This document shows, piece by piece, positions 27,404 through 57,379 of a DNA stretch of 64,000 nt; the stretch's first letter is position 1, and each line of letters starts with the position of its first letter. Origin of the DNA: Diplonema japonicum (Eukaryota; Protista; Euglenozoa: Diplonemea). The stretch covers positions 1-64,000 of the forward strand of contig OZ025762.1 in NCBI GenBank assembly GCA_964019335.1, written 5' to 3'. A program made the position numbers and the translations under genes. Under the pieces are notes generated by a model. That model did not search any database. It saw only the letters and a program-made list of their open reading frames with translations, and was not told where the DNA came from.

Positions 27404-30400
27404 ATGGGGTGTGTAAGCACGAAAACCGAGCGAGTGCACTCAGCAAAAGATCTCGGGAAATCTGTGCACACGGCAGGCAAGTGTTCAGATACGGAGAACA
27501 GCACCTTATCGAGCGCAAGCATGGACACGAAGAAGAAGAAGAAAGGGAAAAAGAAGGGGAAGAAGAAGAACGTGAAGAACGAGACGGCGTCTCCGGAAGC
27601 AACGCTCGCAATCCAAAAAGAAATCGTGGAGAAGTCCTGGAAATGCGTTGCCTCACAGGGGAAGACGGTAGGCCAGCTTCTCCTTGAGAAAATAGTTACG
27701 GAGAAACCAGACCTCGCCGGTCTTTTCGTAAAGTCAAAACGAGCACATGTTGGCACAGCTATGGTGAGATTCCTCTCCCATATAACTGTTAATCTCGCTT
27801 CACGCGATTTCACTGAAGTCTCCGTGGCGCTTGAACAACTGGGTGCACTGCACCACAGGTACACAGTCATACCTGACGAATACCTTTCGGTGTTCAAATC
27901 GGCGGTTTTTTGTTTCGTCGCAAAATACGACCTTACGTGGTGTTCTGAGACAGAATGCGCATGGGAAACCTTCTGGGAGTTGGTCTCAACTCACTTCCTG
28001 ACAGGGTACAGAGACGCTGCTGAGGCAAGCCTCCGGAGAAACCCGTTGAAACGCCCTCCCAACTCCATCGACTTACCGCGGACGTCTTCCTTCAACCGAA
28101 TATGGAACCTTGAAAAGGAGAAGTTGATTCAGAACACGTTGAAACTGCTGATGGAAGGGTGCGAAGAGGCTCGAGGACTTCTCCCGTCGGAGAAGCTCGC
28201 TCCGATGGCGAAAAGGATAGTAGCAAGCTTGGACAGGGTGCTCGCAGGCGAGGACGAGCTAGCCCAAATAGTCACTGCACACAAGACAAATAACATAGCC
28301 GAGGTGATGTTGGACTGTTTCATGCGTTGCTTTCGAGCATCTGTTGGATCCATGGATAAGGCAGACAAGGTTGTCTCGTTTGTGGAATTTACCGTGGACA
28401 GAATCATCCAAGCACAGCGCCATGACGCGTCCTTCCCCCCCCACGCCAACGATATTGTTGCATCGACTTGGAGGCAGACCAAAGAGACCCTCCCGCAGAT
28501 CTTTTTCGAGGAGGTCTTGTCGTCCAGCCCTCCCCTCCGCCCCTTCGCCATCAACCTCAGCTCGATGCTGGTTCCGTTTTGTACCGCAATGGATGAAATT
28601 ATCGAGCTTCTTGGTGATTCGACCGCGCTTCAGATATACCTCACCCGGCTTGTTCTCGGGCATTATTTCCTTGAGATCACAGTGGATGACTTTTCCGCAG
28701 CGGAAATCGTGTTTCACAGAATCATGAAGGAGCTCTTAGGAGAGGAGCACACCCCCGACGTGAAGAAGTCTTGGGAAATGTTGTGGGAGGCGATCATCAA
28801 CGTAACGAAACAGACGAACTTCATCAAACAAGCTCACCTGCAGACCGCGGCTGTGATATGGAAACGTATCGTCGATCACGACAAGCAGCAGCTTTGCATA
28901 GCAACGCTGAGGCATCTCTTCAAAGAGGAGCTACCAGCTGAAAAACTGACGGGCTTGATCTTAAACATGATGACAACGGCTTTACTCGACGAGAGCCCCG
29001 AGATCCCTGCAATGCTGCGGCTCAGCGGGCAGCGACACTCCTCGATTATCTCGATTGAACAACTCGACGATTTCGGCCGTGTCTTCTCAGAGCTCCTTCG
29101 AGAGCAGTCGCAACTGTCCAACAAAGCATGGGTAAGCTGGAACGAAATATTCTCCGGTATCATAGCGACGATCAGAAGCGGGATGGTTCTCCCTGACATG
29201 GACTGGCTTTTCAGCCGGAAAGACGACTTGCAAGCTCTGCTTGAAATATGGGACAAAGACCCGGAGGGGTTCCACACGGGCGACTTCCTAATCCGAGGCC
29301 TGCAGTACTACCCGACGTTCAGAGAAAAGTACCCCGGCATCGTGACGCAGCAGTTTGGCAAAACACTGATGGATTTCTTGAAGGAAACTGTCGAGGCGTT
29401 TGCAGCAGGCGACAGGAATGCGGTCGAATCGTTGCTAAAGAAGCTGCGAAAAATCCATGAGAACATATGGCCCGCCCCTGAGGAACACGACGCGTTTGGA
29501 AAGGTGGTTTTGAACACGCTGACAATGCATTTTGGGGTGCAGCATAGCGAACTTATATGGGGTGTTTTCGCAGTGCTTGGTGATGTGGTGTACAAACCGA
29601 AGGCGGCGAAGGTGGTTGCAAAGGATCACTCCACAGTGGTGCAAAGCTGGGAGAACGAGATACGACCCGCGATTTTAAAGGTTGAGAATGTGAGCCCCGA
29701 GTGCTTGGCGTTCATCGTGGACCAAGTGGAGTCCCCCGACACCGCTGCCGACGCCCCGCCGTTGCCGCCCGCAGAATTCTTCGTATTAACAACAGCCGAT
29801 GTGTTCGATGCAATTTTAATGGAAGACTCCATCGAACTAATGGTTATGAAATGGGGGGTCAGCCAAGCTGCCGGACTCAAAGTACCCAGTGGTGGTGAAA
29901 AAAACGTTTTAGAGGCGGATTGGTCGAAGGTTAAGAACAAGGAAAAAGTGCTTCGGGGTATATTTAAAAAGCTCAACCAGCCTTTCCCCCCTGCCGACAC
30001 GATTATTGAATTCATAGATGTGCTCTGCAAGTGTTCCCTGACGAAGCTGTTGGGGCACTCGAGGAAGGCACGGCTTGTCCCACAGCATGAGAAGCTGCAA
30101 TGGTCGGATTTTAATGCGTTCTTCACGTGTCTCGTCAAAGAGGTGTCGAGCTCTTCCACGCTCCCCATGTGGAAGCCCTGGGCCACCGTTGCGACGCATG
30201 TCATTTCCTTGCACCCGCCGCTCACGCTGCAAGCAGTGTCCCAGCACAACCATCGCGACGATTGCTTCATCGTGGTGAGGAACAGGGTGTACAACGTGAC
30301 GAAGTTCTTGAAGGACCACCCGGCGGGGCAGTCGGCGATTTTGAAACACGCAGGCAAGGATGTCTCGGATATCTTCAAAAGGGTGCATTCCAAGAGTGCT

Positions 30401-30430
30401 TGGAAGCGGTTGGAGGTATTTTTGTTGGAA

Positions 30431-30462
<32 letters not shown>

Positions 30463-30484
30463 CCTAGGAATGGTTTATCGGTGA
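27404..30484 (+). CDS. Multi-globin-domain protein with C-terminal cytochrome b5 domain and N-terminal acylation signal
   Basis: MGC start plus a polybasic patch. At least 4 globin-like repeats have a proximal-His motif (LGALHHRY, LVLGHYF, SGQRHSS, LRKIHEN). The b5 domain reads DCFIVVRNRVYNVTKFLKDHPAG...AGKDVSDIFKRVHS. The exact 3' end is uncertain because of a poly-A run. Confidence 0.82.
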
Positions 30485-41966: not shown

Positions 41967-42344
41967 ACACACGTTTTTTTTTTCTTTTTTGAGAACATGG
42001 GGTGGGGCGGTGGGCGTCTCACAGGAACCTCCAGCTCATTTATGTTTATTAGTTAGAAGCAAAAGAAGAAAGAAAAAAAAAAAAAAAAAAAAAAAAAACA
42101 GAAACAAAAAACTGAGAGAAAAAAAAAAAGGGACATATCTTGAGGATTTGAAGGATTTGTTCCCGAACCCCCCCCCCCCCCCCCCCACCGGATAGCTCTC
42201 CAGTAGAAGTTAAAACAAAGTACCCCCCTTTTGCGTACCCCACACACACCCCTCTTTTTTTTTTTTTTTAAATGTTCAATAATAATAACAACAACAACAG
42301 GATATCCCTCCTTTCTTTTCTTTCCTCTTTTTTTTTTTTTTTCG

Positions 42345-44483
42345 ATGTTAGTGCAAATCTTTCGAACGCAACGTCGCTGGGCGACAATGCGACACAAGGT
42401 AGTGAGCCTGGAGGATGCAGTGTGCGCCGTGCAGTCCGGGGACACCGTGGGCGTAGGAGGCTTCGTGGCACAAAACGCACCAGAAGGCCTTTTAAGAAAA
42501 CTCGGCGAAAGGTACTTAACCACAGGAGAACCAAAGGACCTAACTGTTTTCTTTGGAGGTGGCCCAGGGGACTCAGACACAAAGGGCATATCACACCTCG
42601 GCCACGAGGGTATGGTCAAACGAGCCATTGGCGCACATTACGGACAATGCCCGAAACTAGCAGAACTTGTCTTGCAGAATAAAATAGAAGCGTACAACAT
42701 ACCTCTTGGCGCTGTTGGGAGAATGCTCCGTGCGCAGGCTGCCCACCAACCGGGGTTTTTAACAAGCGTTGGAATTGGGACAATGGTGGACCCTGCCAAC
42801 GGCGGAGGGAAGTTGAACGATCGAACAAAAGACGATATTGTGATCCCTCTTGACGTTGAAGGAAAGCGGCATCTTCTGTACAAATCGCAACCTATAAACG
42901 TGGCGTTCATCAGAGGAACCACCGCCGACGCAAACGGGAACATCAGCATGGAAAAAGAATCGCTTTTCGCCGACAACTTCGCGTTGGCAATGGCGGCGCA
43001 CAACTCGGGGGGTTGCGTCATTGTGCAGGTAGAACGGTTAGCGGAGAGAAACACAATCCCGGCAAGGCGGGTTCACATCCCGGGTTCATTCGTCGATGCT
43101 GTTGTCATATCAAAGCGTCCCGATGAGAACACGCAAAGCTACTTCACCGACTTCAACCCGTTCTGGGCCGGCCAGATCAAAGCACCGCAAGAAGAACTCG
43201 ATAAGCTCCCCATGAACGTTCGTAAGATAATTGCCCGCCGTTCCGCCTCAGAACTTAGAGTCGACGATATAGTTAACCTCGGCATCGGGATGCCCGACGG
43301 TGTCGCCAACGTAGCTTCAGAGGAGAACATCCTCCCTTACATCACATTGACCACCGAACCCGGTATATTCGGCGGTACAGGTGCTGCAGGTAGGGATTTC
43401 GGCCCTGCGAGTAACTATGAAGCCATCATCGATATGTCCGCTCAATTCGATTTCTACAACGGTGGCGGTCTTACCATCGCGTTCCTGGGAATGGCGCAGG
43501 TGTCCCCTGTGGGTGATATCAATGTGACGCGGTTCGGGAACAAATTGACAGGACCTGGTGGGTTCATCGACATTTCACAATGCACCCCAACCGTCGTTTT
43601 CTGCGGTTCATTCACAGCAGGCGGCCTCGAGGTCAAAGTCGACAAGGGCAAGCTCATCATCGTGAAAGAAGGCCGCAACAAAAAATTCGTGAAGACCATC
43701 CAAGAAACATCATTCTCCGCCAAGCAAGCGATCTTCAAGAAACAGCGCGTCCTGTATGTAACAGAAAGATGCGTGTTCGAACTGACACCGAAAGGGCTTG
43801 CTTTGAAAGAAGTCGCACCGGGAATCTCAATCGAAAAACACATTCTCCCGCACATGGACTTCATGCCGGTCAACATTGATCAGGCACGTGAGATGGACCC
43901 TGTGATATTCGACACATCGGGGAAAAGAATGGGGTTGAAGAAGAGGCTGACGGACTTGGACTTTATACACCGCATTAAGTACAGTAGGGAGAAAAATACG
44001 CTGTTGATAGATCTGTCGGGGGTGATCATCACGCACCAATGGCAGATTGATGAGGCTGATGCAGCGTTGACGGAATTCTTCAAAACAGTTGGGAAGAAGG
44101 CACACGTGGTGGCGAATTATGAACGCTTTGACTGCAGAAAATCCCTTGTCGAGAACTGGACCGAAATGGTTCAGCGACACGAAACTGAATCTTACCTCTC
44201 CGCCACACGCTGTGTCAACGGGACCTTCATGCGTGCAAAAGTGTTGAACGGGCTGCAGTTGCATCGTTCCACCGCCATCGAAGCCTTTCAACAACTCGAC
44301 TCCGATCAAACGGGGTACATAGACTGTGAGCAGAGCTACACTCTCTTCAAGAAGATGGGAAGGTTCGTTAAAGACAGGGAAGATTTTAACCGCGCCTTCA
44401 GAACCGTCAGCGTGCGGCACCCTGGGAAGGTTTCCTTCCAAGACATCCAGGAGCTTGACAGAATCCTGCACCGTGCCGAGTGA
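42345..44483 (+). CDS. Family I acetate/propionate CoA-transferase (YdiF/Pct-like) with putative mitochondrial presequence and C-terminal EF-hand
   Basis: VQSGDTVGVGGFV, AFIRGTTADANGN, IVNLGIGMP, catalytic TEPG, GPGGFIDISQ, YVTERCVF. Arg-rich leader MLVQIFRTQRRWAT. EF loop DSDQTGYIDCEQ. Confidence 0.9.
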   Translation: MLVQIFRTQRRWATMRHKVVSLEDAVCAVQSGDTVGVGGFVAQNAPEGLLRKLGERYLTTGEPKDLTVFFGGGPGDSDTKGISHLGHEGMVKRAIGAHYGQCPKLAELVLQNKIEAYNIPLGAVGRMLRAQAAHQPGFLTSVGIGTMVDPANGGGKLNDRTKDDIVIPLDVEGKRHLLYKSQPINVAFIRGTTADANGNISMEKESLFADNFALAMAAHNSGGCVIVQVERLAERNTIPARRVHIPGSFVDAVVISKRPDENTQSYFTDFNPFWAGQIKAPQEELDKLPMNVRKIIARRSASELRVDDIVNLGIGMPDGVANVASEENILPYITLTTEPGIFGGTGAAGRDFGPASNYEAIIDMSAQFDFYNGGGLTIAFLGMAQVSPVGDINVTRFGNKLTGPGGFIDISQCTPTVVFCGSFTAGGLEVKVDKGKLIIVKEGRNKKFVKTIQETSFSAKQAIFKKQRVLYVTERCVFELTPKGLALKEVAPGISIEKHILPHMDFMPVNIDQAREMDPVIFDTSGKRMGLKKRLTDLDFIHRIKYSREKNTLLIDLSGVIITHQWQIDEADAALTEFFKTVGKKAHVVANYERFDCRKSLVENWTEMVQRHETESYLSATRCVNGTFMRAKVLNGLQLHRSTAIEAFQQLDSDQTGYIDCEQSYTLFKKMGRFVKDREDFNRAFRTVSVRHPGKVSFQDIQELDRILHRAE

Positions 44484-46145: not shown

Positions 46146-47264
46146 ATGGATCCGTTGGTACTTCAGGAGAAGGAGCAAGGGGAGTGCTTCGTTACGAACA
46201 ACAACAACACCACACCCCTCACAAAAGAGGAAGGGAGGCTTGCCTTGTGGAGTGCTGTCTCAAAAGGGGACCTTGAGGAGATGAGGGATCTTGTTCTGGA
46301 GCGGGGTGTCGACCCTGGTGCAGCGGACAGCGATGGTTTCACAGCCCTGCACCATGCAGCTCGCGAGAACAACTGTGTCGAGGCTGTGGCTGCTCTCGTC
46401 TCTTCTTACCACCAGGACCCTGGTGTCAGAAGCAACAAAGGTTTGACACCGGTTCATGAAGCAGCAGGGAAGGGACACATCGAGATTGTTAAATATCTAG
46501 CTGAAAATTGTGGTCAAGACTGTGGTGTCAAAGACAACAGCGGTTGGACACCGGTTCATCTTGCATCAGAGAACGGCCACCTCGAGACAGTTAAATATCT
46601 CGCCGAGGCTCGCGGTCAAGACTGTGGTGTCAAACTCAACCACGGTTGGACACCACTTCATTTTGCATCACGGCACGGCCACCTCGAGACATTAAAATAT
46701 CTTGTCGAAAACCGTGGTCAAGACTGTGGTGTCAAATGCAACGTGAGTTGGACACTACTTCATCTTGCATCACATTACGGCCACTTTGAAATTGTTAAAT
46801 ATCTCGCCGAAAACCGCGGTCAAGACTGTGGTGTCAAAAGCAACGAGGGTTGTACACCACTTCTTGCAGCAGAGAAGGGACACATCGAGACAGTTAAATA
46901 TCTTGTCGAAAACCGCTGTCAAGACGCAGGTAGCAAAAGCAACGAGGGTTGGACACTGGTTCATGAAGCAGCAGATAATGGCCACCTTGAAATAGTTAAA
47001 TATCTCACCGAAAACCGCGGTCAAGACTGTGGTGTCAAATGCAACGAGGGTTGTACACCACTACATCTTGCAGCAGAGAAGGGACACATCGAGACAGTTA
47101 AATATCTTGTCGAAAACCGCGGTCAAGACTGTGGTGTCAAAAACAACAACGGTTGTACACCGCTTCATGAAGCAACAGCGAAGAGGCACCTCGAGGTAGT
47201 TAAAATTCTTGTTGCATCTTACGGTCTAACCCGTGGTCCGAAGCGTCGAAAGCTGCAACAGTAG
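46146..47264 (+). CDS. Ankyrin-repeat protein (paralog 1)
   Basis: About 10 repeats of 34 aa, GxTPLHLAxxxGHLEIVKYLxENRGQDCGVK. Confidence 0.92.
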   Translation: MDPLVLQEKEQGECFVTNNNNTTPLTKEEGRLALWSAVSKGDLEEMRDLVLERGVDPGAADSDGFTALHHAARENNCVEAVAALVSSYHQDPGVRSNKGLTPVHEAAGKGHIEIVKYLAENCGQDCGVKDNSGWTPVHLASENGHLETVKYLAEARGQDCGVKLNHGWTPLHFASRHGHLETLKYLVENRGQDCGVKCNVSWTLLHLASHYGHFEIVKYLAENRGQDCGVKSNEGCTPLLAAEKGHIETVKYLVENRCQDAGSKSNEGWTLVHEAADNGHLEIVKYLTENRGQDCGVKCNEGCTPLHLAAEKGHIETVKYLVENRGQDCGVKNNNGCTPLHEATAKRHLEVVKILVASYGLTRGPKRRKLQQ

Positions 47265-47719
47265 GAAACTGGATGGTATAAAAACAGCAGTCCTTTATGG
47301 GTTTAGAAAAAGAAGAGAAAAAAAGGAAAGAAAAGAAAAGAACAAGAAACAGGATGTTTGAATACCTACGCCACTCTGAATAGAAAAAGAAAAGAGCGAG
47401 AAAAGGGCGAGATTCTTCTAAAGAATCAGGAAGAGAAAAATATCCGGGTTTTTTTATTTTCTGGGAGTTTGTCACTCCGGCATTTTTCTCCCCCTGAATC
47501 TTTTTTAACTGAGGGGCTTATGGGGAGCACACTATCCTCAAGAAGGGGTCCGCTGCACCCTCGGGACAGCATTCGGCCGTGGGACAGGTTTTCTTTTTTT
47601 TACCACCGAAGAAGGAGAAACCACTGCTGAAAGGGGATAGGTACAGGTAGTGGATGAGAACTTGGGGGCGTCTTACAAAGATTTCCTTTAACTCATATAT
47701 ATTTGTTTTTTTCGCATTG

Positions 47720-48027
47720 GGCGGTGGAATCAACATCAGATGTGTTGTTCGCTGTTGACCTCCTCGTCGGTCATCACCGGTAGCGCCCGGGTGGAAGATC
47801 ATATAGCAGATGCTCAGGGTGACGAACTGGTGGCAAACTGCACGAGCGCAGAATCTTGGTTACCCGGGACGCTCCCTGGCTGGGGTTGAGCTGTACACCG
47901 CACACATTAAGGACACGACACGGAACGCAGAAGAAGCTACAACTCGGCCGCGGTGTGCCCCCTGTAATCAAGTAGACAGTTCTTGTGCAGTGGCGCCGCC
48001 AACACCGGCCTCCTTTAACTCATATAT
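47720..48027 (+). mobile_element. Near full-length ribozyme-retroposon copy with shortened J1/2
   Basis: GGCGGTG...GACCTCCTCGTCGGTCATCACCGG...GGGTGACGAAC (C47823)...AACTCATATAT. It is preceded by the tail of another copy at ~47685-47700. Confidence 0.88.
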
Positions 48028-48151
48028 TTTCTTCTTCTTTTTTAATAAAGTGCCCCCCCCCCTTTTTTTCACCTACTTTTTCGTCTCATCTATCTAAAAC
48101 AGGAAAAGAAAAAAAAAAGAAGAGAATACACGAAAATAAAACTATTGAGAG

Positions 48152-48952
48152 ATGAAAAAGGGAAGAGGTAGAAGAGGTGCTTCCGTGACTACCGGGAAGA
48201 AGGCCGGGCTTACGCTCCCTGTTTCAAGGGTAGCGAAGCGAATGAAGGAGATAGGCAGATGCAGCAGGGTGTCGAAGGAGGCAGCCGTCATAATTTGTGC
48301 AGCCGCACAACATTTCTTAGAAGAGGTACTGGAAGCATCACACCAGCAGAGGCGAGAGACGCTCACACCAAAGCATCTTAAAGAGGCTTTTGAGCACGAT
48401 GCTGATTTGTCGGAGCACTTTTACCAGTCGGAGCCCCACATGATGCGCAGTGGGATGCCAGTGGGCAGCGTAGGAGAGTTTGCTTTGAGGAACTACAAAA
48501 GAAAAAAAATCAAGAAGGTCAAGACGGTTAAAAAGCCAAAAAAAACTGCGAAAAAACCGATGAAGAAAACGGGTGCTGCACCACCTGTAAAACAAGATAC
48601 TGCACAAGAAGACACCGCATGTGCTGCCCCTATGCCCCAGCGCCGTGTCCTAGAAGCTACACCTACCGCAGGAAGACGAGGCACAGGGCACAAATGGCAA
48701 TATGTAGAAAACGATGAAACATGGAGAGACTACAGAGTAGATGCGTCTGCTGTTGTAGAGCAGCATTTCCATGAATGGGAACAGGACGGTAAGGGCAGTG
48801 ACATTGTCGTAAGAGCCGTGAAATCTGGAGATTGGTCTTATGATGTGTGCTTCAAGACGCTGCAGCAAACCAACGTCGATCACCAAAGCCACACCAAAAG
48901 GAGGATCCGCAGGGTAACCCTGAGTGAGCCTGCTGGCGGAAGGGTTTCGTAA
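48152..48952 (+). CDS. Histone H2A-like fold + Lys-rich linker + WWE domain protein
   Basis: KAGLTLPVSRV..RVSKEAAV..EVLE..TPKHL..DADL (H2A pattern), then KRKKIKKVKTVKKPKKTAKK, then KWQY...WRDY...VE...YDVCFKTLQQTN...TKRRIRR (WWE pattern). Confidence 0.82.
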   Translation: MKKGRGRRGASVTTGKKAGLTLPVSRVAKRMKEIGRCSRVSKEAAVIICAAAQHFLEEVLEASHQQRRETLTPKHLKEAFEHDADLSEHFYQSEPHMMRSGMPVGSVGEFALRNYKRKKIKKVKTVKKPKKTAKKPMKKTGAAPPVKQDTAQEDTACAAPMPQRRVLEATPTAGRRGTGHKWQYVENDETWRDYRVDASAVVEQHFHEWEQDGKGSDIVVRAVKSGDWSYDVCFKTLQQTNVDHQSHTKRRIRRVTLSEPAGGRVS

Positions 48953-49613
48953 AAAAAGAAGAAAAAAAAGAAAGCAACGCAAACGTAGTGGAGTGTCGAA
49001 CACACGGGAGGGGGGGGGGGGGGGGGGGGGAGCTTTAGATAATGGAAACGTTTTTTCTTTTTTTTTCTTTTTTTTCTTTTTTTTCTCCCTTCCTCCAATT
49101 CTTTTTTTTTTTTATCCCATGGTTAACTGAGAGGGAGGGGAATATAATTTTCCAACTTTTTCGTCATTATTTTCTTTTTTTGTTTTTGTTTTGTTCTATT
49201 TAAAGCGACGGGGGCTGATTTCGAATGTCGAGATAAGATCTTTGCCATTTGATGCCCCTACCGGCCGAAGCAAGCAAAAAACCGCCAAAAGTGTAAAGTG
49301 TTTCCTTCAGTAAAGGAACACGTCCGACTCCAATACTTGACAAGCACTTTGTTGCCTCCAATCTGGGGACGTCCTTGTAAGGTTTTTTAATACTGCTCCT
49401 TTCGTCTTTCAAGAGGTTTAAAAAAAAAAAAAAAAAAAAAAGCCGGGCAACGCGTGGAGGGAGGGGGGGGGGGGGGGGGGGGGCAGGGGAGCAAGATGAC
49501 GTCTGCAGTGGGGGCATCGATGTTGAAGAGGCAGCACAGGACCAGCAGAAAGCTAAAAGGCTCCACACAGCCCAGCTGGGTGGGGTCGGTCAGGCTAGAC
49601 CAAGATGGGGTGG

Positions 49614-49656
<43 letters not shown>

Positions 49657-50399
49657 AGGCTTGATGACAAGGGGGGTGAATGGCATACCTCAGCTCCAGC
49701 CCGCATTCCGAAACATAGACATCAATCGTGAAAAGCGCTCCGACATCTGGGAGTTCAAATCCGCCTTGAGAGACCAAGGCCTGAAACTATGGGACAGAGA
49801 ACTTGACTCCTGTTCACGTACCACGACCTGACTGCTGCGGTGAAATAGACATAGATGACTTCCTTGCAGAAGGTGTAGAGCAACTCCTTCAAACCATTCT
49901 TCTCAAACTCCGCGCATGCGACAGAGGACCGCGAGCGAACCCACTCCAGCTGCATAGGTCTCTCCAGAATGCTCACAAGATCTGGGGGGCAGAAGGGGGT
50001 CGGGACCCTCTATTACAACGAGTCGCAGTGGTCGACTGTCCTGCATTCCTACAACTAGGAACAATCGGAAACAACCCTACACAATGTAGGAGTGCCGGCC
50101 CGGCGTGCTACGAGGGCGATAGGCTATGCAAGGTTTCACAGACCTCGCACCCTATGGTTTAGTTTCCACCTTTTCCATTTTCTTTCCACTTTTGAAATTT
50201 TTTGAACTTTTTATTCCCCTTTCTTCTTTTTCCTTTTCCCACATGTTTTCGGTCCCGGGTATTACGATAAACTGCGTCCGCCGACGCGTCTGGACCAGCA
50301 CTTCCTGGCGAGGACGTTTTTCGCTTTTTATTCCCACTTGCAATATCATTTCAGCCACCTCTACCTGCACAACATCAAACAACAACAACAACGAAAAGC

Positions 50400-52343
50400 A
50401 TGGATCCGTCGGTACTTCAGGAGAAGGAGCAAGGGGGGTGCTTCGTTACGAACAACAACAACACCACACCCCTCACAAAAGAGGAAGGGAGGCTTGCCTT
50501 GTGGAGTGCTGTCTCAAAAGGGGACCTTGAGGAGATGAGGGATCTTGTTCTGGAGCGGGGTGTCGACCCTGGTGCAGCGGACAGCGATGGTTTCACAGCC
50601 CTGCACCATGCAGCTCGCGAGAACAACTGTGTCGAGGCTGTGGCTGCTCTCGTCTCTTCTTACCACCAGGACCCTGGTGTCAGAAGCAACAAAGGTTTGA
50701 CACCGGTTCATGAAGCAGCAGGGAAGGGACACATCGAGATTGTTAAATATCTAGCTGAAAATTGTGGTCAAGACTGTGGTGTCAAAAGCAACGACGGTAG
50801 GACACCGGTTCATCTTGCATCATTGACCGGCCACCTCATGACATTAAAATATCTTGTCGAAAATCGTGGCCAAGACTGTGGTGTCAAATTCTTGAATGGT
50901 TGGACACCGGTTCATCTTGCATCACAGAACGGCCACCTCGACACATTAAAATACCTTGTCGAAAACCACGGTCAAGACGCAGGTATCAAAACCTCCAGCG
51001 GCAGGACATCAGTTCATCTTGCATCACATTACGGCCACCTCGAGACAGTTAAATATCTTGTCGAAGCTTGCGGTCAAGACTGTGGTCTCAAAAGCAACGA
51101 GGGTTGTACACCGCTTCATGTAGCATCGAAGATGGGACACATCGAGATAGTTAAATATCTCGCCGAAAACCGCGGTCAAGACTGTGGTGTCAAATGCAAC
51201 GACGGTAGGACACCGGTTCATCTTGCATCACTGACCGGCCACCTCATGACATTAAAATATCTTGTCGAAAATCGTGGCCAAGACTGTGGTGTCAAATTCT
51301 TGAATGGTTGGACACCGGTTCATCTTGCATCACATAACGGCCACCTCGAGACATTAAAATACCTTGTCGAAAACCGCGGTCAAGACTGTGGTGTGGAAAG
51401 CAACGACGGTAGTACACCGCTTCATGAAGCAGCAGAGAAGGGACATATCGGGATTGTTAAATATCTCGCCGAAAATTGCGGTCAAGACTGTGGTGTCAAA
51501 AGCTACGACGGTAGGACGCCGGTTCATCTTGCATCGAAGAACGGCCACCTCGAGACATTAAAATATCTTGTTGAAAACCGCGGTCAAGACGCAGGTATCG
51601 AAAGAAACGCAGGTATCAAAAGAAACGTGGGTCGGACACCGCTTCATGACGCAGCAGAGAGCGGCCACCTTGAAATAGTTAAATATCTTACCAAAAACCG
51701 CGGACAAGACAGAGGAATCAAATGCAAAGCCGGTTGTACACCGCTTCATGTCGCAGCATGGAAGGGACGCATCGAGATAGTAAAATATCTTGCCGAAAAC
51801 TGCGGTCAGGACTGTGGTGGCAAACTCAACGACGGTAGTACACCGGTTCATCTTGTATCGAAGAACGGCCACCTCGAGACATTAAAATATCTTGTCGAAA
51901 ATCGCGGCCAGGACTGTGGTGTCAAAAGCAATGGGGGTTGTACACCGCTTCATCAAGCAGCAGGAAGTGGACACATCGAGATAGTGAAATATCTCGCCGA
52001 AAATTGTGGTCAAGACTGTGGTGTCAAAGACAACAGCGGTTGGACATCGGTTCATCTTGCATCACATTACGGCCACCTCGAGACATTAAAATATGTTGTT
52101 GAAAACCGCGGTCAAGACGCAGGTATCAAAAGAAACGACGGTTGTACACCGCTTCATATTGCATCAAGGAAAGGACACATCGAGATGGTTAAATATCTCA
52201 CCGACTGCAGTCAAGACAGTGGTGTCAAAAACAACAACGGTTGTACACCGCTTCATGAAGCGGTAACAGAGAGGCACCTCGAGATAGTAAAATATCTTGT
52301 TGCATCTTACGGTCTAACCCGTGGTCAGAAACTACAACAGTAG
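50400..52343 (+). CDS. Ankyrin-repeat protein (paralog 2, expanded repeat number)
   Basis: The first ~128 aa are nearly identical to 46146..47264; about 18 repeats. Confidence 0.92.
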   Translation: MDPSVLQEKEQGGCFVTNNNNTTPLTKEEGRLALWSAVSKGDLEEMRDLVLERGVDPGAADSDGFTALHHAARENNCVEAVAALVSSYHQDPGVRSNKGLTPVHEAAGKGHIEIVKYLAENCGQDCGVKSNDGRTPVHLASLTGHLMTLKYLVENRGQDCGVKFLNGWTPVHLASQNGHLDTLKYLVENHGQDAGIKTSSGRTSVHLASHYGHLETVKYLVEACGQDCGLKSNEGCTPLHVASKMGHIEIVKYLAENRGQDCGVKCNDGRTPVHLASLTGHLMTLKYLVENRGQDCGVKFLNGWTPVHLASHNGHLETLKYLVENRGQDCGVESNDGSTPLHEAAEKGHIGIVKYLAENCGQDCGVKSYDGRTPVHLASKNGHLETLKYLVENRGQDAGIERNAGIKRNVGRTPLHDAAESGHLEIVKYLTKNRGQDRGIKCKAGCTPLHVAAWKGRIEIVKYLAENCGQDCGGKLNDGSTPVHLVSKNGHLETLKYLVENRGQDCGVKSNGGCTPLHQAAGSGHIEIVKYLAENCGQDCGVKDNSGWTSVHLASHYGHLETLKYVVENRGQDAGIKRNDGCTPLHIASRKGHIEMVKYLTDCSQDSGVKNNNGCTPLHEAVTERHLEIVKYLVASYGLTRGQKLQQ

Positions 52344-53338: not shown

Positions 53339-55318
53339 AATCATTTTATTTTCCTCTTGCCCCTTAAATGTTTCTTTTTCTTTTTAGTGTTCTTTTTCCT
53401 CCCCACCCCTTTTATTATTTCCTTTATATCGCCACCCTTTAAAAAAAAAAACGGTTTATTTACCCCTTCCCCCCCATTTTCTTTTTTACCCATCCCTTCC
53501 ACCGGTATATAAAAAAAAAAGAGTGCCTCATTAAGAAGAAAAGAATGTTAAAACGACAAGCTGCGCTCCGTAGTAGTAGCGTCCCTTAAAACAGCCACAC
53601 CGAATGGGACCAGCTGGAGGAAGTCATCGAGGAAGTTGCGTCCCGGAATAGCTCGTCAGCGGTCAAGCCGTCTGGCCCGAAAAACACTGGGAGACAGCGA
53701 GCAAGTCGTGTGGCCTACTACCTTTCTTAATAGATGCTTTACAGCTGCGTTCAACCCAATATCCATCGGTTGAACCATGTAGGTGAGCCCAGGGGGACAA
53801 AAGCAATGTGCACGTTTGCGCCTGCGAACCACTCTACGAACCCATAGGCATAGGTCGTGTGAGAGTTGTGGTCGCCGACAAGCAGCAGAATCGGCCCGTT
53901 CGGCAAAACCATGGGAATCGATGGTTTATAGCAAAAAGGAAGAAACAGCTCCGTAACCCAGATACCGAGTATCATAATTAGCCCAATGATTGGGCGATGC
54001 CGTTAGGCTCCATGCGACGGGGCACGGATAATCCCTGCCGGTTGCGTTTCCGCTTTGCCTTTGTATTTAAGTTGCAACCCATCCAGCCAAGGAAACAGCC
54101 AGCTGTTCGGTTATAGCCGTTTTGTCCCCCAAGCCACGGACTTTTACGACCTTAGCACCCCTTTTCGTTTTAGTTTTTAACCCTGTATTCCAGACCAATT
54201 CCGGCCTTACTTTATGGGTGTCGATTATGGACCTGAATTCCATGGTGCCCTCTCGTTGTCCTTCTCGTTTCCGGGCTTTCCGGAGGTGGCTTGCGGCTTT
54301 TGTCTTTCTTGCTGCAAAGTTTTGTCAGCCTAGTCAGTGGAAAAGGACAGTGCTCCACCAAAGTCTGCCAGGTTTGTCTTTCGGGCTGGATTGGCGCGCA
54401 GCAGCCCTTCTGCATAGGTGTTGTGCTGGGATAAGCTCGCCAAGCCCGTTTTACCTATCGACTCAAGCAAAAACTTTCAGCCCCCGAAGGATGCTAAATC
54501 CCGTATTGGGCGATACGCTGCTATCACGGCGTCGCGGCGGCCAGGGTGTGGTAGGGTGGAATAGCAACGTCCAGTATTTCCGTCTGGAAGAAACTGGGGG
54601 CTCTGTTGAACCTGTTGCTGCCGTCTTCTGACCGAGGCAGAGGCCGCCAAGCTGCTTTCGGGGGTTTGTACTGGCCTTCTCGGCCCGGTGTAAGGAGTTT
54701 ATCTCCTCCACCTCTCGGGGGTGAGCTGGCCGGGGGTGTCAGCACCAAAGTTGGGCCCCTCACAAGCCAGCTGCTCAACGTGCCTTGGGTAGTCGAACTG
54801 GTTAATTTGACGAAAGAAGTACGGGTTTATGAGAAGTTAAAGATCCCGTGGGTGCTGTTTGTTGGTGCATTGAAAGGGGAAGAAAAATTCAAACTGCCAC
54901 GCAGGGTAAACATTTTGGCGCACAAGGAATAAAGCCCTTCCAGGCAACGTGGTGGGAGCTGCTACCCCCCCTTAAGTAAAAAAACTTCTTCCCAGAAAAA
55001 CTCCCGGACGGAAAAATGTCCGGGTTTTTTTGGTGTCCGGGAGTTTTTCTGTCCGAGAATTTTTCCGTCCGACATTATTCGTTTTACAGTATATGATCAA
55101 TGTGTGTTTATAGTAAACCCGTAAATGCAGATGTCGGCACGCCCAGTTGTATCGCTGTGGGCCCCTCGCGGAAAAGTATATGTATAAGAAGTCCAGCATG
55201 CACAACCAGCAGAACTCCGATCAGGCTCGTTGAGGGCGTTAATGAACGCAAAGAACTACGTTACAGCGGGAGAAAAGGACAGGAGCGCAGCGTACGCCTC
55301 AAAGTGGAAGGGAAGAAG

Positions 55319-56839
55319 ATGCTGTTCGACCACGCGTTGTTCCCCTGTGACCTGAAGAGGGTGTGCCGCTACGGTGGATGCGATCTTCGCCTCATGGAGG
55401 GGAGGAAGGGAAGGGAAAACTGCACCTCGTGCCTTGCAACCTTCGGGGCGTCCCTGCCCCTCTTGTCCTGCTGTGTGGGGCACCACTTCCGGCTCTGCAT
55501 GTACTGTGGAGGGCACCCTGAGGTCCTTTCTCTTTCCGTCGGGGAAGTGGTGGTTCCTGGCCCCACCTGGATCCACACGGAAGAAGGGACCCCCGCCACA
55601 CATGGCACCGTGGAAGTGATGACCGACAAAACACTCGGGGTGAGGTGGGTTGACCAGGAGCGCTCCCGCAGACTCACCTTCCTCAGACCACTCCCTTTCT
55701 GTGATGTCGTTCCTGCAGACCTTTCCTGTGCTGAGGGGGATGATGATCCCTTCGTCGACAAGGATTCTTCTGCGAGGGAGGCTGACCGCAGTCACCGGAA
55801 GGCGTACAGGAAAAAGCACTTGTTGGTGGGAGAGTACGAAGGGATCTTCATGAGCACGGGTGAAGGGACGGCTCCTGCAGGCAGGGACCACGTGTCGAGG
55901 TTATTCTTCCCAACAAGAGAGTTGTTTGATGAGCTTTTAGCCCTGCGGTTCTTGGGACAGGAGGTGGACCTGTACGAAGGCATGCAGCAAGGTACCGACA
56001 TGGTAGGTGTTGTGACAAAGATGCATGGGGAACAGGTTCTGTGGGAAGAGGTGTTCCGTCACGTGGATTCTGGGGACAAGCAGTGGTACACTGTGGAGGA
56101 AGAGTACGCATCCGGCAGTCGTTCGTGTGACGAGGAGTGGCACGTTTCCTTGAGGCGTGAGGGGATGCTGAAGGGCCCTCCAAGGACAGCGAGCGCGGAT
56201 GAATGCGAGCAGTCATTATTATTTGACTGGGTGTGTGACAAGGTGATGGAAGAGGCAGGTTGCAATGGCGAAGTGGCCCACGTGACAAGCAGCATGCTGG
56301 TGTTCAAAGTGAAATGCTTCGAGGATGCTCTGAGTGTGTGGCGATCGATGAAGAAAGCCCCCTGCAGCCAAGAGATCACCATACAACTCCCTGACGGGGA
56401 GCGTCAATCCGTCTGGGTGTCGAGCAAGGAGACAGTCGGGTCGTTCCGAAAGAAGGTTGCAAACACCATGTGGACGGATAGCAGCACGATGTACACCATC
56501 GAGGCTCTGGACAGGGAGGACTCTGAGACGGAACTCTTCAGTGCCATCGAAACCGATGAGGTGTCCGTGTCCCTTTCAAAAAGAGAGACCTCCTTCCTAT
56601 TCTTGAAGCAGCTCTACCCCACTTATGTAAACGTGACCATCTCACAGTTCACGAAGCTCCTCGACGAAAACACAGCACACGAGGAGCTCATCACCCTCAT
56701 CGTCGATTCCTACCCACACCTCCTTGAGGAGCAGCACCCCATTACCGGCTTCACACCACTCATCCACTGCGTCGTGCAAGGGGACGTTGCCGGGGTACGT
56801 CATCTCGTAGCTGAACTGTCACCATACACAGAAAGGAAC

Positions 56840-56870
<31 letters not shown>

Positions 56871-57379
56871 CGAACGAAAGAGAAGATCGCGTGTCCGGAG
56901 TCACACCTCTCACGGCCTGCCTTATGAACGGAGGGAGTTTGGACATCTTGAGCCTGCTGCTTGATGCGGGGGAACGTGCTAATGAAGAGCTGGAAGGTAG
57001 AAGGCCGCTGCACATCTGCGCGCACAACGGCATGTCGGACGCCTTCGAACTTCTTGCCGACAGAGGTGCGGACCCAACGACACGGGACACAGATATGAGA
57101 ACACCGCTTGTGGTAGCAGCGATACAGGAACGCCACAAGCTGCTTCGTGCAGTGGCCGGGAGGTGTGTGTCAGGCATGAACATGAGGGACGTGTACGGGA
57201 GGACTGCGCTTCACTATGTTTCGGTGTCGGGCGATGTCCTGACGATGCGGGCACTGGTGGAAAACGGGGCGGACGTGCATGCGAAGGACGACGATGGGTG
57301 CGATCCCATGTGGTTCGCTGTGGAGTACTGCAACGAGGCCGCAATCAGGTACCTCATCTCTCAAGGGGTGGACTGGTAG
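55319..57379 (+). CDS. Protein with Cys-rich N-terminus, central UBL-like segment and C-terminal ankyrin repeats
   Basis: ITIQLPDGERQSVWVSSKETVGSFRKKVA (UBL-like); GFTPLIHC, GRRPLHIC, GRTALHY (ankyrin); (ACA)n poly-Thr tract. Start codon uncertain. Confidence 0.8.

Follow-up and report, generated by a model that had tools for sequence, protein, structure and literature searches.

Can a core histone other than macroH2A carry its own reader of ADP-ribose? In macroH2A, an H2A domain is followed by a basic linker and an ADP-ribose-binding macrodomain. A 64,000-nucleotide stretch of DNA from the marine protist Diplonema japonicum (contig OZ025762.1, positions 1 to 64,000 of the forward strand; referred to here as the window) contains an open reading frame at 48152..48952 (+) with a comparable layout but a different C-terminal module. 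A first-pass annotation, made from the sequence alone, described it as an H2A-like domain, a lysine-rich linker and a WWE domain, and proposed an independently evolved histone variant that couples nucleosomes to poly(ADP-ribose) (PAR) signaling. It also named three outcomes that would overturn this proposal, namely grouping of the N-terminal domain with non-nucleosomal histone folds, failure of the C-terminus in WWE profile searches, and absence of a transcript spanning both domains. None of the three was observed. The analyses described below confirm that the architecture is present as described, whereas the proposed interpretation is supported only in part, because nucleosome incorporation remains an inference and the fusion is not a unique invention.

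Architecture and Expression of the Fusion Gene

The open reading frame is complete, encodes 266 amino acids plus a stop codon, and lacks introns. It begins with a basic N-terminal tail (48152..48199 (+), aa 1-16, KKGRGRRG...) that resembles an H2A N-tail and aligns with those of canonical H2A. The tail precedes an H2A-type histone fold (48200..48427 (+), aa 17-92) and a docking-like stretch (48428..48487 (+), aa 93-112), which has the right length and ends in KRKK but is predicted to be disordered. A lysine-rich linker resembling an H1 tail follows (48488..48595 (+), aa 113-148), with 17 lysine or arginine residues among its 36 positions and no aspartate or glutamate. This linker is homologous to that of diplonemid WWE proteins lacking a histone fold (P0003 aligns from aa 120). 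A non-basic spacer (48596..48688 (+), aa 149-179; APMPxRRxLEATPxAGRRGTG), conserved with a paralogue on contig C110, connects the linker to the WWE domain (48689..48919 (+), aa 180-256).

A Trinity transcript of D. japonicum encodes the same full-length protein (P0001; co-linear, 99% identity over 266 aa), and hence a transcript spans both domains, although the RNA evidence is a single de novo assembly. In public sequencing runs, the matching sequences were unitigs that also cover the spacers and therefore look like DNA, and no SL or poly(A) ends could be assigned to them.

The gene lies in a block of about 2 kb (48027..49995 (+)) duplicated from C33:371928-369713 with 86-97% identity. The block holds the gene, its upstream pyrimidine-rich spacer and fragments of the downstream EF-hand gene, and a second full-length copy of the gene lies at C33. 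Because the gene is a recent dispersed duplicate next to a high-copy repeat, its histone fold is under relaxed selection (see below) and its RNA support is limited to a de novo assembly, it could be a young duplicate on its way to becoming a pseudogene, or the long reading frame might not be the translated unit. This possibility is very unlikely, given that both copies have intact reading frames (266 and 269 aa), that each has its own Trinity transcript, and that the WWE domain is under constraint.

A Divergent H2A-Type Histone Domain

Pfam searches identified CBFD_NFYB_HMF at residues 21-79 (E 8.7e-8, 32.8 bits) and Histone (PF00125) at residues 18-79 with 25.9 bits, just under the cut-off of 26.4. 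A six-frame search of the genome gave 29.7 bits for the latter profile, but that match runs through upstream stop codons. All 60 listed phmmer matches among sequences of solved structures are H2A (E 1.7e-8 to 7e-6). The motifs recognized in the first-pass annotation are present (AGLTLPVSR, RVS..AAV, EVLE, TPKHL and DADL), and the H2A signature at the alphaN/alpha1 junction (aa 18-26) carries one conservative change, F25 to L. R29, R42 and K74/K75 are retained. The AlphaFold2 (AF2) model predicts a confident fold (pLDDT 83-89) with alpha1 at 24-34, a short alpha2 at 42-63, alpha3 at 73-82 and alphaC at 84-91, and the fold was compared with known structures by using Foldseek and VIA-align. In VIA-align, Z scores are 6.8-7.5 for H2A, macroH2A and H2A.B chains (7.1 for macroH2A and 6.8 for H2A.B), compared to 5.1 or less for TAFs, archaeal histone, NC2 and Dpb3/4, although the superposition on H2A stops at residue 66.

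The higher score of the CBFD_NFYB_HMF profile could indicate a non-nucleosomal histone fold of the NF-YC, DRAP1, POLE4 or CHRAC class, and CHRAC-like clusters were among the ESM Atlas matches, all of which scored below 0.9. However, bona fide H2A proteins also match this profile, no such factor appears among the 60 listed structure-sequence hits, NC2alpha/DRAP1 and Dpb3/4 reach a Z score of only 4.0, and the H2A-specific AGLxLPVxR and P-K-H-L motifs and an H2A-like N-tail are present. This alternative is therefore strongly disfavored. A word-indexed search with the fold alone returned no hits.

The domain departs from canonical H2A in several respects. Alpha2 is four residues shorter at its C-terminal end, a gap reproduced by HMMER and MAFFT; the first-pass annotation had placed a shortening of about this size in the connection between helices 2 and 3. 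The L2 minor-groove arginine R77 aligns with T70, and K36 is replaced by glutamate. At the acidic-patch positions E56, E61, E64, D90, E91 and E92, the aligned residues are Q, E, E, D, A and D, so that four of six are acidic, one by a conservative change. The docking-like stretch is visible only by eye: the H2A C-terminal profile (Histone_H2A_C, PF16211) gave no match even at E values up to 10, and a local H2A profile aligns only to position 94 of 116.

Selection on the fold also calls for caution. Between the two paralogues, dN/dS is 1.05 in the histone fold (25 nonsynonymous and 7 synonymous changes), indicating no net purifying selection, compared to 0.25 in the WWE domain and 0.25-0.5 in the linker and WWE domain. 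The copy at C33 has lost P80, gained a proline in alpha2, and no longer matches Pfam Histone. One reading of these data is that the linker and WWE domain are the working part, a lysine-rich, H1-tail-like DNA or chromatin binder carrying a WWE reader, and that the recently acquired H2A-like domain is a decaying passenger that no longer pairs with H2B or enters nucleosomes. In support of this view, there is no detectable docking motif, and six of the eight members of the diplonemid WWE clade lack any histone fold, the closest relatives of the linker–WWE half (the C110 paralogue and proteins of D. ambulator and Sulcionema) working without one. On the other hand, both paralogues keep the 5' half open and nearly identical over aa 17-53, which covers the signature, alpha1, L1 and the start of alpha2. 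In addition, the derived copy (C115) kept its reading frame while the co-duplicated neighboring gene decayed, AF2 predicts a confident fold, and the counts behind dN/dS are small. The passenger model is thus considered unlikely, but it is the most serious alternative.

The WWE Domain and Its Predicted Ligand Site

The C-terminal domain matches the Pfam WWE profile (PF02825) at residues 181-254 with 40.3 bits against a cut-off of 21.1 (E 4.1e-10), covering 66 of 67 profile positions. A single-sequence search against structure sequences found nothing, but a profile of the family hit only WWE structures. The AF2 model has pLDDT values above 90 for residues 180-256 and shows the WWE half-beta-barrel plus helix. 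It superposes on the WWE domains of TRIP12 (Z 10.2, rmsd 2.1 A over 71 aa), RNF146 (Z 10.1) and HUWE1 (Z 9.2), with target-normalized TM scores of 0.71-0.79 in Foldseek. W182, W191, E203, Y230 and Q239, the residues named in the first-pass annotation, are at least 90% conserved across the 150 nearest relatives (W191 was measured only in a 14-member set).

Based on the ligand contacts described for WWE domains (PMC11269756), an aromatic residue and a glutamine contact adenine, and a tyrosine and an arginine contact the proximal phosphate. Profile alignment places Y184 (aligned with TRIP12 W771 and RNF146 Y107), Q239, Y230 and R250 at these positions, and the last three are at least 90% conserved in the 150 relatives. 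In contrast, the basic loop for the distal phosphate, which gives iso-ADP-ribose specificity in RNF146 (R110/W114), is acidic here. The loop Y184-VENDET-W191 has the same length, with R110 corresponding to N187, a mapping that rests on spacing rather than on a direct RNF146 alignment. High-affinity iso-ADP-ribose binding is therefore doubtful, whereas binding of ADP-ribose or PAR, inferred from sequence and predicted structure alone, is more likely than not. The D. japonicum genome has more than 30 PARP loci, 5 PARG genes and about 15 WWE reading frames.

Relatives and Origin of the Fusion

The WWE domain belongs to a subfamily that is usually fused to linker histone H1, as described in clandestinovirus (as a 'bifunctional linker histone H1/H5'), the pithovirus-like LCPAC304 and amoebae (Talbert, Armache and Henikoff 2022, PMC9145170). 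These proteins share the same WWE subfamily (WQ[YF]...DVRAVKSG.W.Y.VDF...QTN..H..HT.R.IRRV) on a basic tether behind a chromatin-binding module, and the clandestinovirus protein is the best viral structural match (E 3.4e-9). In the Diplonema protein, the anchor is an H2A-type core-histone fold instead of the H1/H5 winged helix, and Pfam Linker_histone (PF00538) does not match. Of the 150 nearest clusters, 146 have WWE, 44 Linker_histone and 13 core Histone, and a few carry HMG, Chromo, BRCT, WGR, or zf-PARP with DNA ligase. In dinoflagellates, another bulk chromatin protein, DVNP, is fused to WWE and WGR (bioRxiv 10.1101/2024.02.09.579734); the chromatin module and the lineage are different, but WGR also occurs among the nearest relatives found here.

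At least 12 clusters carry this WWE subfamily on H2A, in the Dermamoebida (Paradermamoeba levis and Dermamoeba algensis) and in environmental protists represented by JGI/Logan contigs (P0009-P0015, P0017, P0019, P0057, P0095, P0160 and others). Their three-part architecture is identical, but most have a near-canonical H2A with a full alpha2 and the H2A C-terminal motif; P0010, P0014 and P0019 match PF16211. A profile search with the H2A-WWE alignment was swamped by mispredicted fish H2A tandems, and a metagenome scan returned mostly 1-kb contigs without context, of which one locus, from a human-gut metagenome record, was left out. No paper describing an H2A-WWE protein was found, in agreement with the first-pass annotation, which knew of none.

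The Diplonema WWE domain nests among diplonemid WWE proteins that lack a histone fold. A single clade of all H2A-fused WWE domains is rejected (p-AU 9e-33), although a single origin is only borderline on the H2A domain (p 0.055). The fusion is therefore lineage-specific, and the H2A-WWE junctions arose or were lost several times.

The source of the histone fold is less well resolved. The maximum likelihood tree places it next to an H2B-H2A doublet (P0153) and a divergent singlet (P0126) with support 93/91, and the top structure-sequence hit is the Marseillevirus H2B-H2A doublet. Together with the occurrence of H1-WWE and many other WWE proteins in giant viruses (PMC9145170), and with a GC3 of the gene and its flanking Ank genes that is lower than in housekeeping neighbors, this could suggest that the fold or the whole gene came from a giant virus and serves virus–host conflict rather than host chromatin regulation. 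However, the Marseillevirus score is inflated by the lysine-rich tail, and its structural Z score is 5.6, compared to 7.5 for cellular H2A. P0153 and P0126 are themselves closest to cellular H2A/H2B, and scans of IMG/VR with the family profile, P0126 and P0153 found nothing. The grouping may reflect long-branch attraction, a host origin is not rejected (p-AU 0.19), and the linker–WWE half is clearly diplonemid. A viral origin is thus retained only as a remote possibility, while no close stand-alone source gene for the fold exists in the genome.

Discussion

The data are best explained by a genuine, transcribed, lineage-specific chimeric gene in which a strongly diverged H2A-type fold replaced the N-terminus of an older diplonemid protein consisting of a lysine-rich linker and a WWE domain. 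This explanation is held with moderate confidence. In the proposed mechanism, the histone fold would anchor the protein on chromatin, presumably paired with an H2B, and, if nucleosomal, the protein would behave like a short or destabilizing H2A variant. The basic linker would also bind DNA, and the WWE domain, on a flexible tether of about 90 residues, would bind ADP-ribose units of mono- or poly-ADP-ribosylated chromatin proteins, so that the protein would mark, retain or bridge ADP-ribosylated chromatin. The analysis establishes the reading frame, the domain identities, the paralogues, transcription across both domains (within the limits of the single assembly), membership in a chromatin-tethered WWE subfamily, conservation of the ligand-contact residues, and the independent origin of the fusion. 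H2B pairing, nucleosome incorporation, ADP-ribose or PAR binding and the biological role are inferred, and incorporation into nucleosomes is uncertain, being judged somewhat less likely than not.

The order of parts is the same as in macroH2A: an H2A-type fold, a lysine-rich, H1-like linker and a C-terminal globular domain of a class that reads ADP-ribose. The reader is a WWE domain rather than a macrodomain, for which no match is found in the protein, and none of the macrodomains in the genome lies at a histone locus. The layout is independent of macroH2A, and the protein is an analogue, not a member, of that family. Its histone fold is far more diverged than that of macroH2A, with a short alpha2 and no docking motif, and it represents a young, species-level fusion rather than an ancient variant. 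Short H2A variants (the H2A.B/H2A.Bbd class) likewise have a missing or degenerate docking domain, and their reduced acidic patch may have a counterpart here, where four of six positions are acidic, but there is no sequence kinship beyond H2A, and short H2As have no C-terminal reader domain and keep a full-length alpha2.

A broader reading, which is tentative, would hold that H2A-WWE is a recurrently evolved, bona fide class of nucleosomal histone variant in Amoebozoa (Dermamoebida), Euglenozoa and unidentified environmental protists. Such a class would be functionally convergent with macroH2A, placing an ADP-ribose/PAR reader on the nucleosome through a basic linker, and the Diplonema genes would be a young, fast-evolving instance of it.

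More generally, macroH2A is the textbook case of a core histone that carries a metabolite or ADP-ribose reader and is usually treated as a one-off. On the evidence of the WWE domain, a different reader of this kind appears to have been joined to H2A several times independently, and the same subfamily is also joined to H1, DVNP, HMG and Chromo modules. This suggests a general, repeatedly selected solution, in which ADP-ribosylation is wired directly into bulk chromatin proteins. The H2A-WWE proteins also provide experimentally tractable natural constructs for asking what a nucleosome-tethered PAR reader does, and how far an H2A fold can drift, with a short alpha2 and no docking motif, and still work. 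Diplonemids are abundant marine protists with almost unexplored chromatin, and this genome has an unusually large PARP/PARG/WWE repertoire, the setting in which the protein would most likely act as a chromatin-anchored ADP-ribose reader.

A Single Reading Frame Joins an H2A-Type Fold to a WWE Domain

The first-pass annotation described window 48152-48952 (+) as a fusion of an H2A-type histone, a lysine-rich linker, and a WWE domain, and this description was confirmed in the sequence. The region is an uninterrupted ORF of 266 aa with in-frame stops just upstream of its ATG. The window is polycistronic, with almost all long ORFs between 9 and 62 kb lying on the + strand and separated by homopolymer-rich spacers. 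Three ankyrin-repeat genes flank the H2A–WWE gene (46146-47264, 50400-52343, and 55100-57379), and the two nearest have a GC3 of 0.45, compared to 0.58-0.66 in the kinase, globin, and CoA-transferase neighbors. Two other ORFs in the window have unusual multidomain compositions, a globin plus cytochrome b5 protein of 1026 aa (27404-30484) and a CoA-transferase of 750 aa with a C-terminal EF-hand pair (42231-44483).

The EukProt protein EP01064_Diplonema_japonicum_P025459 (P0001), a Trinity ORF classified as complete, has the same length and is 99% identical to the window protein, which indicates that the organism is Diplonema japonicum or a very close strain and that a transcript spans both domains. 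One of its three differences, E189Q, corresponds to the G>C variant at 48716 seen in a public sequencing run. It is important to note that P0001 derives from a de novo assembly, and that the public runs examined are DNA-like unitigs that give no independent RNA support.

The C-terminal domain is a WWE domain. Pfam places it at aa 181-254 with 40.3 bits against a cut-off of 21.1, and a profile built from this region hits only WWE structures among solved proteins (Deltex, TRIP12, DTX1, PARP11, ZAP, HUWE1, and RNF146). The AlphaFold2 model has pLDDT values above 90 for residues 180-256 and superposes on the WWE domains of TRIP12 (Z 10.2, rmsd 2.1 Å over 71 aa), RNF146 (Z 10.1), and HUWE1 (Z 9.2).

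The N-terminal domain is H2A-derived. Pfam assigns it to CBFD_NFYB_HMF with 32.8 bits and to Histone with 25.9 bits, just under the cut-off of 26.4 for the latter. The CBFD_NFYB_HMF match could suggest a fold of the NF-YC/DRAP1 type, but this reading is not borne out, since all 60 listed sequence hits to solved structures are H2A. In the predicted model, helices α1 (24-34), α2 (42-63), α3 (73-82), and αC (84-91) have pLDDT values of 74-89. A structural search independent of Foldseek gives H2A chains Z scores of 6.8-7.5, including the macroH2A histone domain (7.1) and H2A.B (6.8), in contrast to 5.1 for TAFs, 4.9 for an archaeal histone, and 4.0 for NC2α/DRAP1 and Dpb3/4.

A residue map against canonical H2A shows that the AGLxLPVxR signature (with F25 changed to L), R29, R42, K74/K75 (as R), and P80-K-H82-L83 are kept. 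The acidic-patch positions 56, 61, 64, 90, 91, and 92 are occupied by Q, E, E, D, A, and D, respectively. R77 is replaced by T and K36 by E, and four residues are missing at the C-terminal end of α2; the structural superposition on H2A ends at residue 66. Following αC is a stretch of docking-domain length that ends in KRKK, but it is not significantly similar to the H2A C-terminal motif, as Pfam PF16211 gives no hit and a local H2A HMM aligns only to position 94 of 116. Hence, the domain fails two structural hallmarks of a canonical nucleosomal H2A. Residues 113-148 hold 17 K+R and no acidic residue.

The ordinary Diplonema H2A genes (loci L005:1474-1956 and L062:2675-2172, on genome contigs C86 and C29) carry an acidic insertion of 8-11 residues in the α2-L2 region, so that the length of this region is unusually plastic in this lineage, in both directions. 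Another ORF, of 402 aa (locus L004:2601-1393 (-), corresponding to contig C10 at ~200.6-201.9 kb), combines a ubiquitin-like start, ankyrin repeats, and a C-terminal H2A with a recognizable docking segment. It shares the unusual PVSRVxKxMK α1 motif with the H2A–WWE protein, yet groups with the host H2A clade.

The Gene Is a Dispersed Duplicate with Uneven Constraint

The 62.5-Mb genome contains two full-length copies of the gene, the one described here on contig C115 and a copy encoding 269 aa at C33:370994-371794 (-); the two are 86% identical. A 239-aa paralog on contig C110 consists of a Lys-rich segment and a WWE domain without a histone fold. Only window 48027-49995 is shared with C33. 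This block includes fragments of an EF-hand gene (49,454-50,162) that is broken in the window by homopolymer runs and deletions, whereas the same gene is an intact ORF of 322 aa downstream of the C33 paralog. C33 is therefore the parental locus, and the window copy is a dispersed duplicate of about 2 kb in which the co-duplicated neighbor has decayed. The upstream edge of the duplicated block (48027) coincides with the 3' end of a spacer region at about 47,700-48,040, where unitig depth is 100 to 1000 times that of the flanks in four public runs, with many variant joints, indicating a very high-copy dispersed repeat.

Between the two full-length copies, dN/dS is 1.05 in the histone fold (25 nonsynonymous and 7 synonymous changes), 0.5 in the linker (5 nonsynonymous and 3 synonymous), and 0.25 in the WWE domain (2 nonsynonymous and 2 synonymous). 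The changes cluster from late α2 through α3, while aa 17-53 are nearly identical. The C33 copy is the more eroded one, with P80 changed to S and a proline in α2.

H2A–WWE Fusions Recur in Other Protists

An exhaustive phmmer search over 1.84 billion representatives found 511 relatives. Among the 150 best, 146 have WWE, 44 have Linker_histone, and 13 have a core Histone domain; a few carry HMG-box, Chromo, BRCT, WGR, or zf-PARP plus DNA ligase. True H2A–linker–WWE proteins make up at least 12 clusters at 50% identity (P0009-P0015, P0017, P0019, P0057, P0095, and the query's own cluster), and further clusters at the 90% level are P0160, P0161, P0164, P0166, P0180, P0203, and P0232. They come from the amoebozoans Paradermamoeba levis and Dermamoeba algensis and from JGI/Logan environmental contigs, and none of the listed members comes from NCBI or UniRef; one metagenome locus from a human-gut record (L055) was left out of consideration. 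Several members hit Pfam Histone, Histone_H2A_C, and WWE together, and their H2A is therefore near-canonical. In two of the JGI/Logan proteins, P0011 and P0014, the H2A domain groups with the Diplonema canonical H2A clade (support 92/87), which suggests that other euglenozoans may carry H2A–WWE with a normal H2A.

In phylogenies of the WWE domain, the two Diplonema H2A–WWE copies nest inside a diplonemid clade, with an SH-aLRT support of 98 in a 162-row tree and, in the careful 52-row tree, support of 91/90 for all 8 members and 98/91 for a 7-row subset. The other six members, from Sulcionema specki, D. ambulator, the C110 locus, and three environmental proteins, lack any detectable N-terminal fold. 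Forcing all H2A-fused WWE domains into one clade costs 215 log-likelihood units (p-AU 9e-33). The Diplonema junction is therefore most parsimoniously a recent gain, and H2A–WWE junctions arose, or were lost, several times.

The phylogeny of the histone fold itself does not resolve its source. The fold sits on a branch of 2.3 substitutions per site, next to an H2B–H2A doublet (P0153) and a divergent singlet (P0126) with support of 93/91, a grouping flagged as possible long-branch attraction, and a host origin is not rejected (p-AU 0.19). Although these neighbors might appear viral-like, they are closest to cellular histones and are absent from IMG/VR. P0153, encoded on a 5.2-kb Logan contig, is a natural single-chain H2B–H2A doublet with a long Lys-rich tail, and both of its halves are closest to cellular H2B and H2A (up to 135 bits to engineered H2B–H2A chimeras).

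Predicted Ligand Contacts of the WWE Domain

Conserved WWE–ligand contacts have been defined (PMC11269756) as an aromatic residue stacking on adenine (Trp in HUWE1 and TRIP12; Tyr107 in RNF146, where the hydroxyl also binds the distal ribose and favors iso-ADPr), a Gln that hydrogen-bonds adenine, and a Tyr and an Arg on the proximal phosphate. In the profile alignment to TRIP12, the W-Q-Y of the family aligns with W-Q-W771, identifying Y184 as the equivalent of Tyr107. Y230, Q239, and R250 align with the Tyr, Gln, and Arg, and are at least 90% conserved across 150 relatives. In contrast, the basic RNF146 loop for the distal phosphate (R110) is replaced by an acidic loop of the same length, VENDET, although this mapping rests on spacing rather than on a direct alignment with RNF146. 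The arrangement resembles that described for HUWE1 and TRIP12, which prefer terminal ADP(r). The subfamily has additional near-invariant residues that are not typical of WWE domains in general, namely the DVRAVKSG motif, N241, the H244/H247 pair, and the IRR tail (window 48,881-48,913, aa 244-254, and alignments A3 and A5), hinting at a subfamily-specific ligand or partner surface.

The genome supplies the ligand side, with an ADP-ribosylation toolkit that is strikingly large for a euglenozoan (for example at C24:145.6-147.9 kb, C17:341.8-342.9 kb, C104, and C89). It comprises more than 30 loci with a PARP catalytic domain, several of them in tandem, 5 PARG genes, about 15 WWE-bearing ORFs, some of which are WWE–PARP fusions, including WWE–WWE–PARP proteins, and 7 macrodomain loci. 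None of the macrodomains lies at a histone locus, so there is no macroH2A in this genome.

Relation to Known Chromatin–Reader Fusions

Proteins that join linker histone H1 to WWE have been described in clandestinovirus, LCPAC304, and amoebae (PMC9145170), and the clandestinovirus protein is the best viral structural match to the predicted model of the Diplonema protein. Dinoflagellate DVNPs with WWE and WGR domains have also been described (bioRxiv 10.1101/2024.02.09.579734). No paper mentioning H2A–WWE was found in the literature searched, which was incomplete, so that this is absence of evidence only, and the large chromatin-evolution survey never mentions WWE.

The proposal in the first-pass annotation that the gene encodes an independently evolved histone variant coupling nucleosomes to PAR signaling is supported only in part. 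The reading frame, the identities of its domains, its paralogs, the conservation of the ligand-contact residues, and the independent origin of the fusion are established by the analyses described here, as is a transcript across both domains, within the limits of a de novo assembly; entry into nucleosomes and recognition of ADP-ribose are inferred. The gene is best read as a putative chromatin-anchored ADP-ribose reader built on an H2A-derived fold. Fusions of a histone to a reader domain (macroH2A) and of a chromatin protein to WWE (H1–WWE) are already known, and the Diplonema protein differs from the former in its reader and from the latter in its histone module. That this particular fold, relaxed and truncated, still enters nucleosomes is possible, but on present evidence somewhat less likely than not. 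The near-canonical H2A–WWE proteins of other protists are the stronger candidates for a true macroH2A analog.
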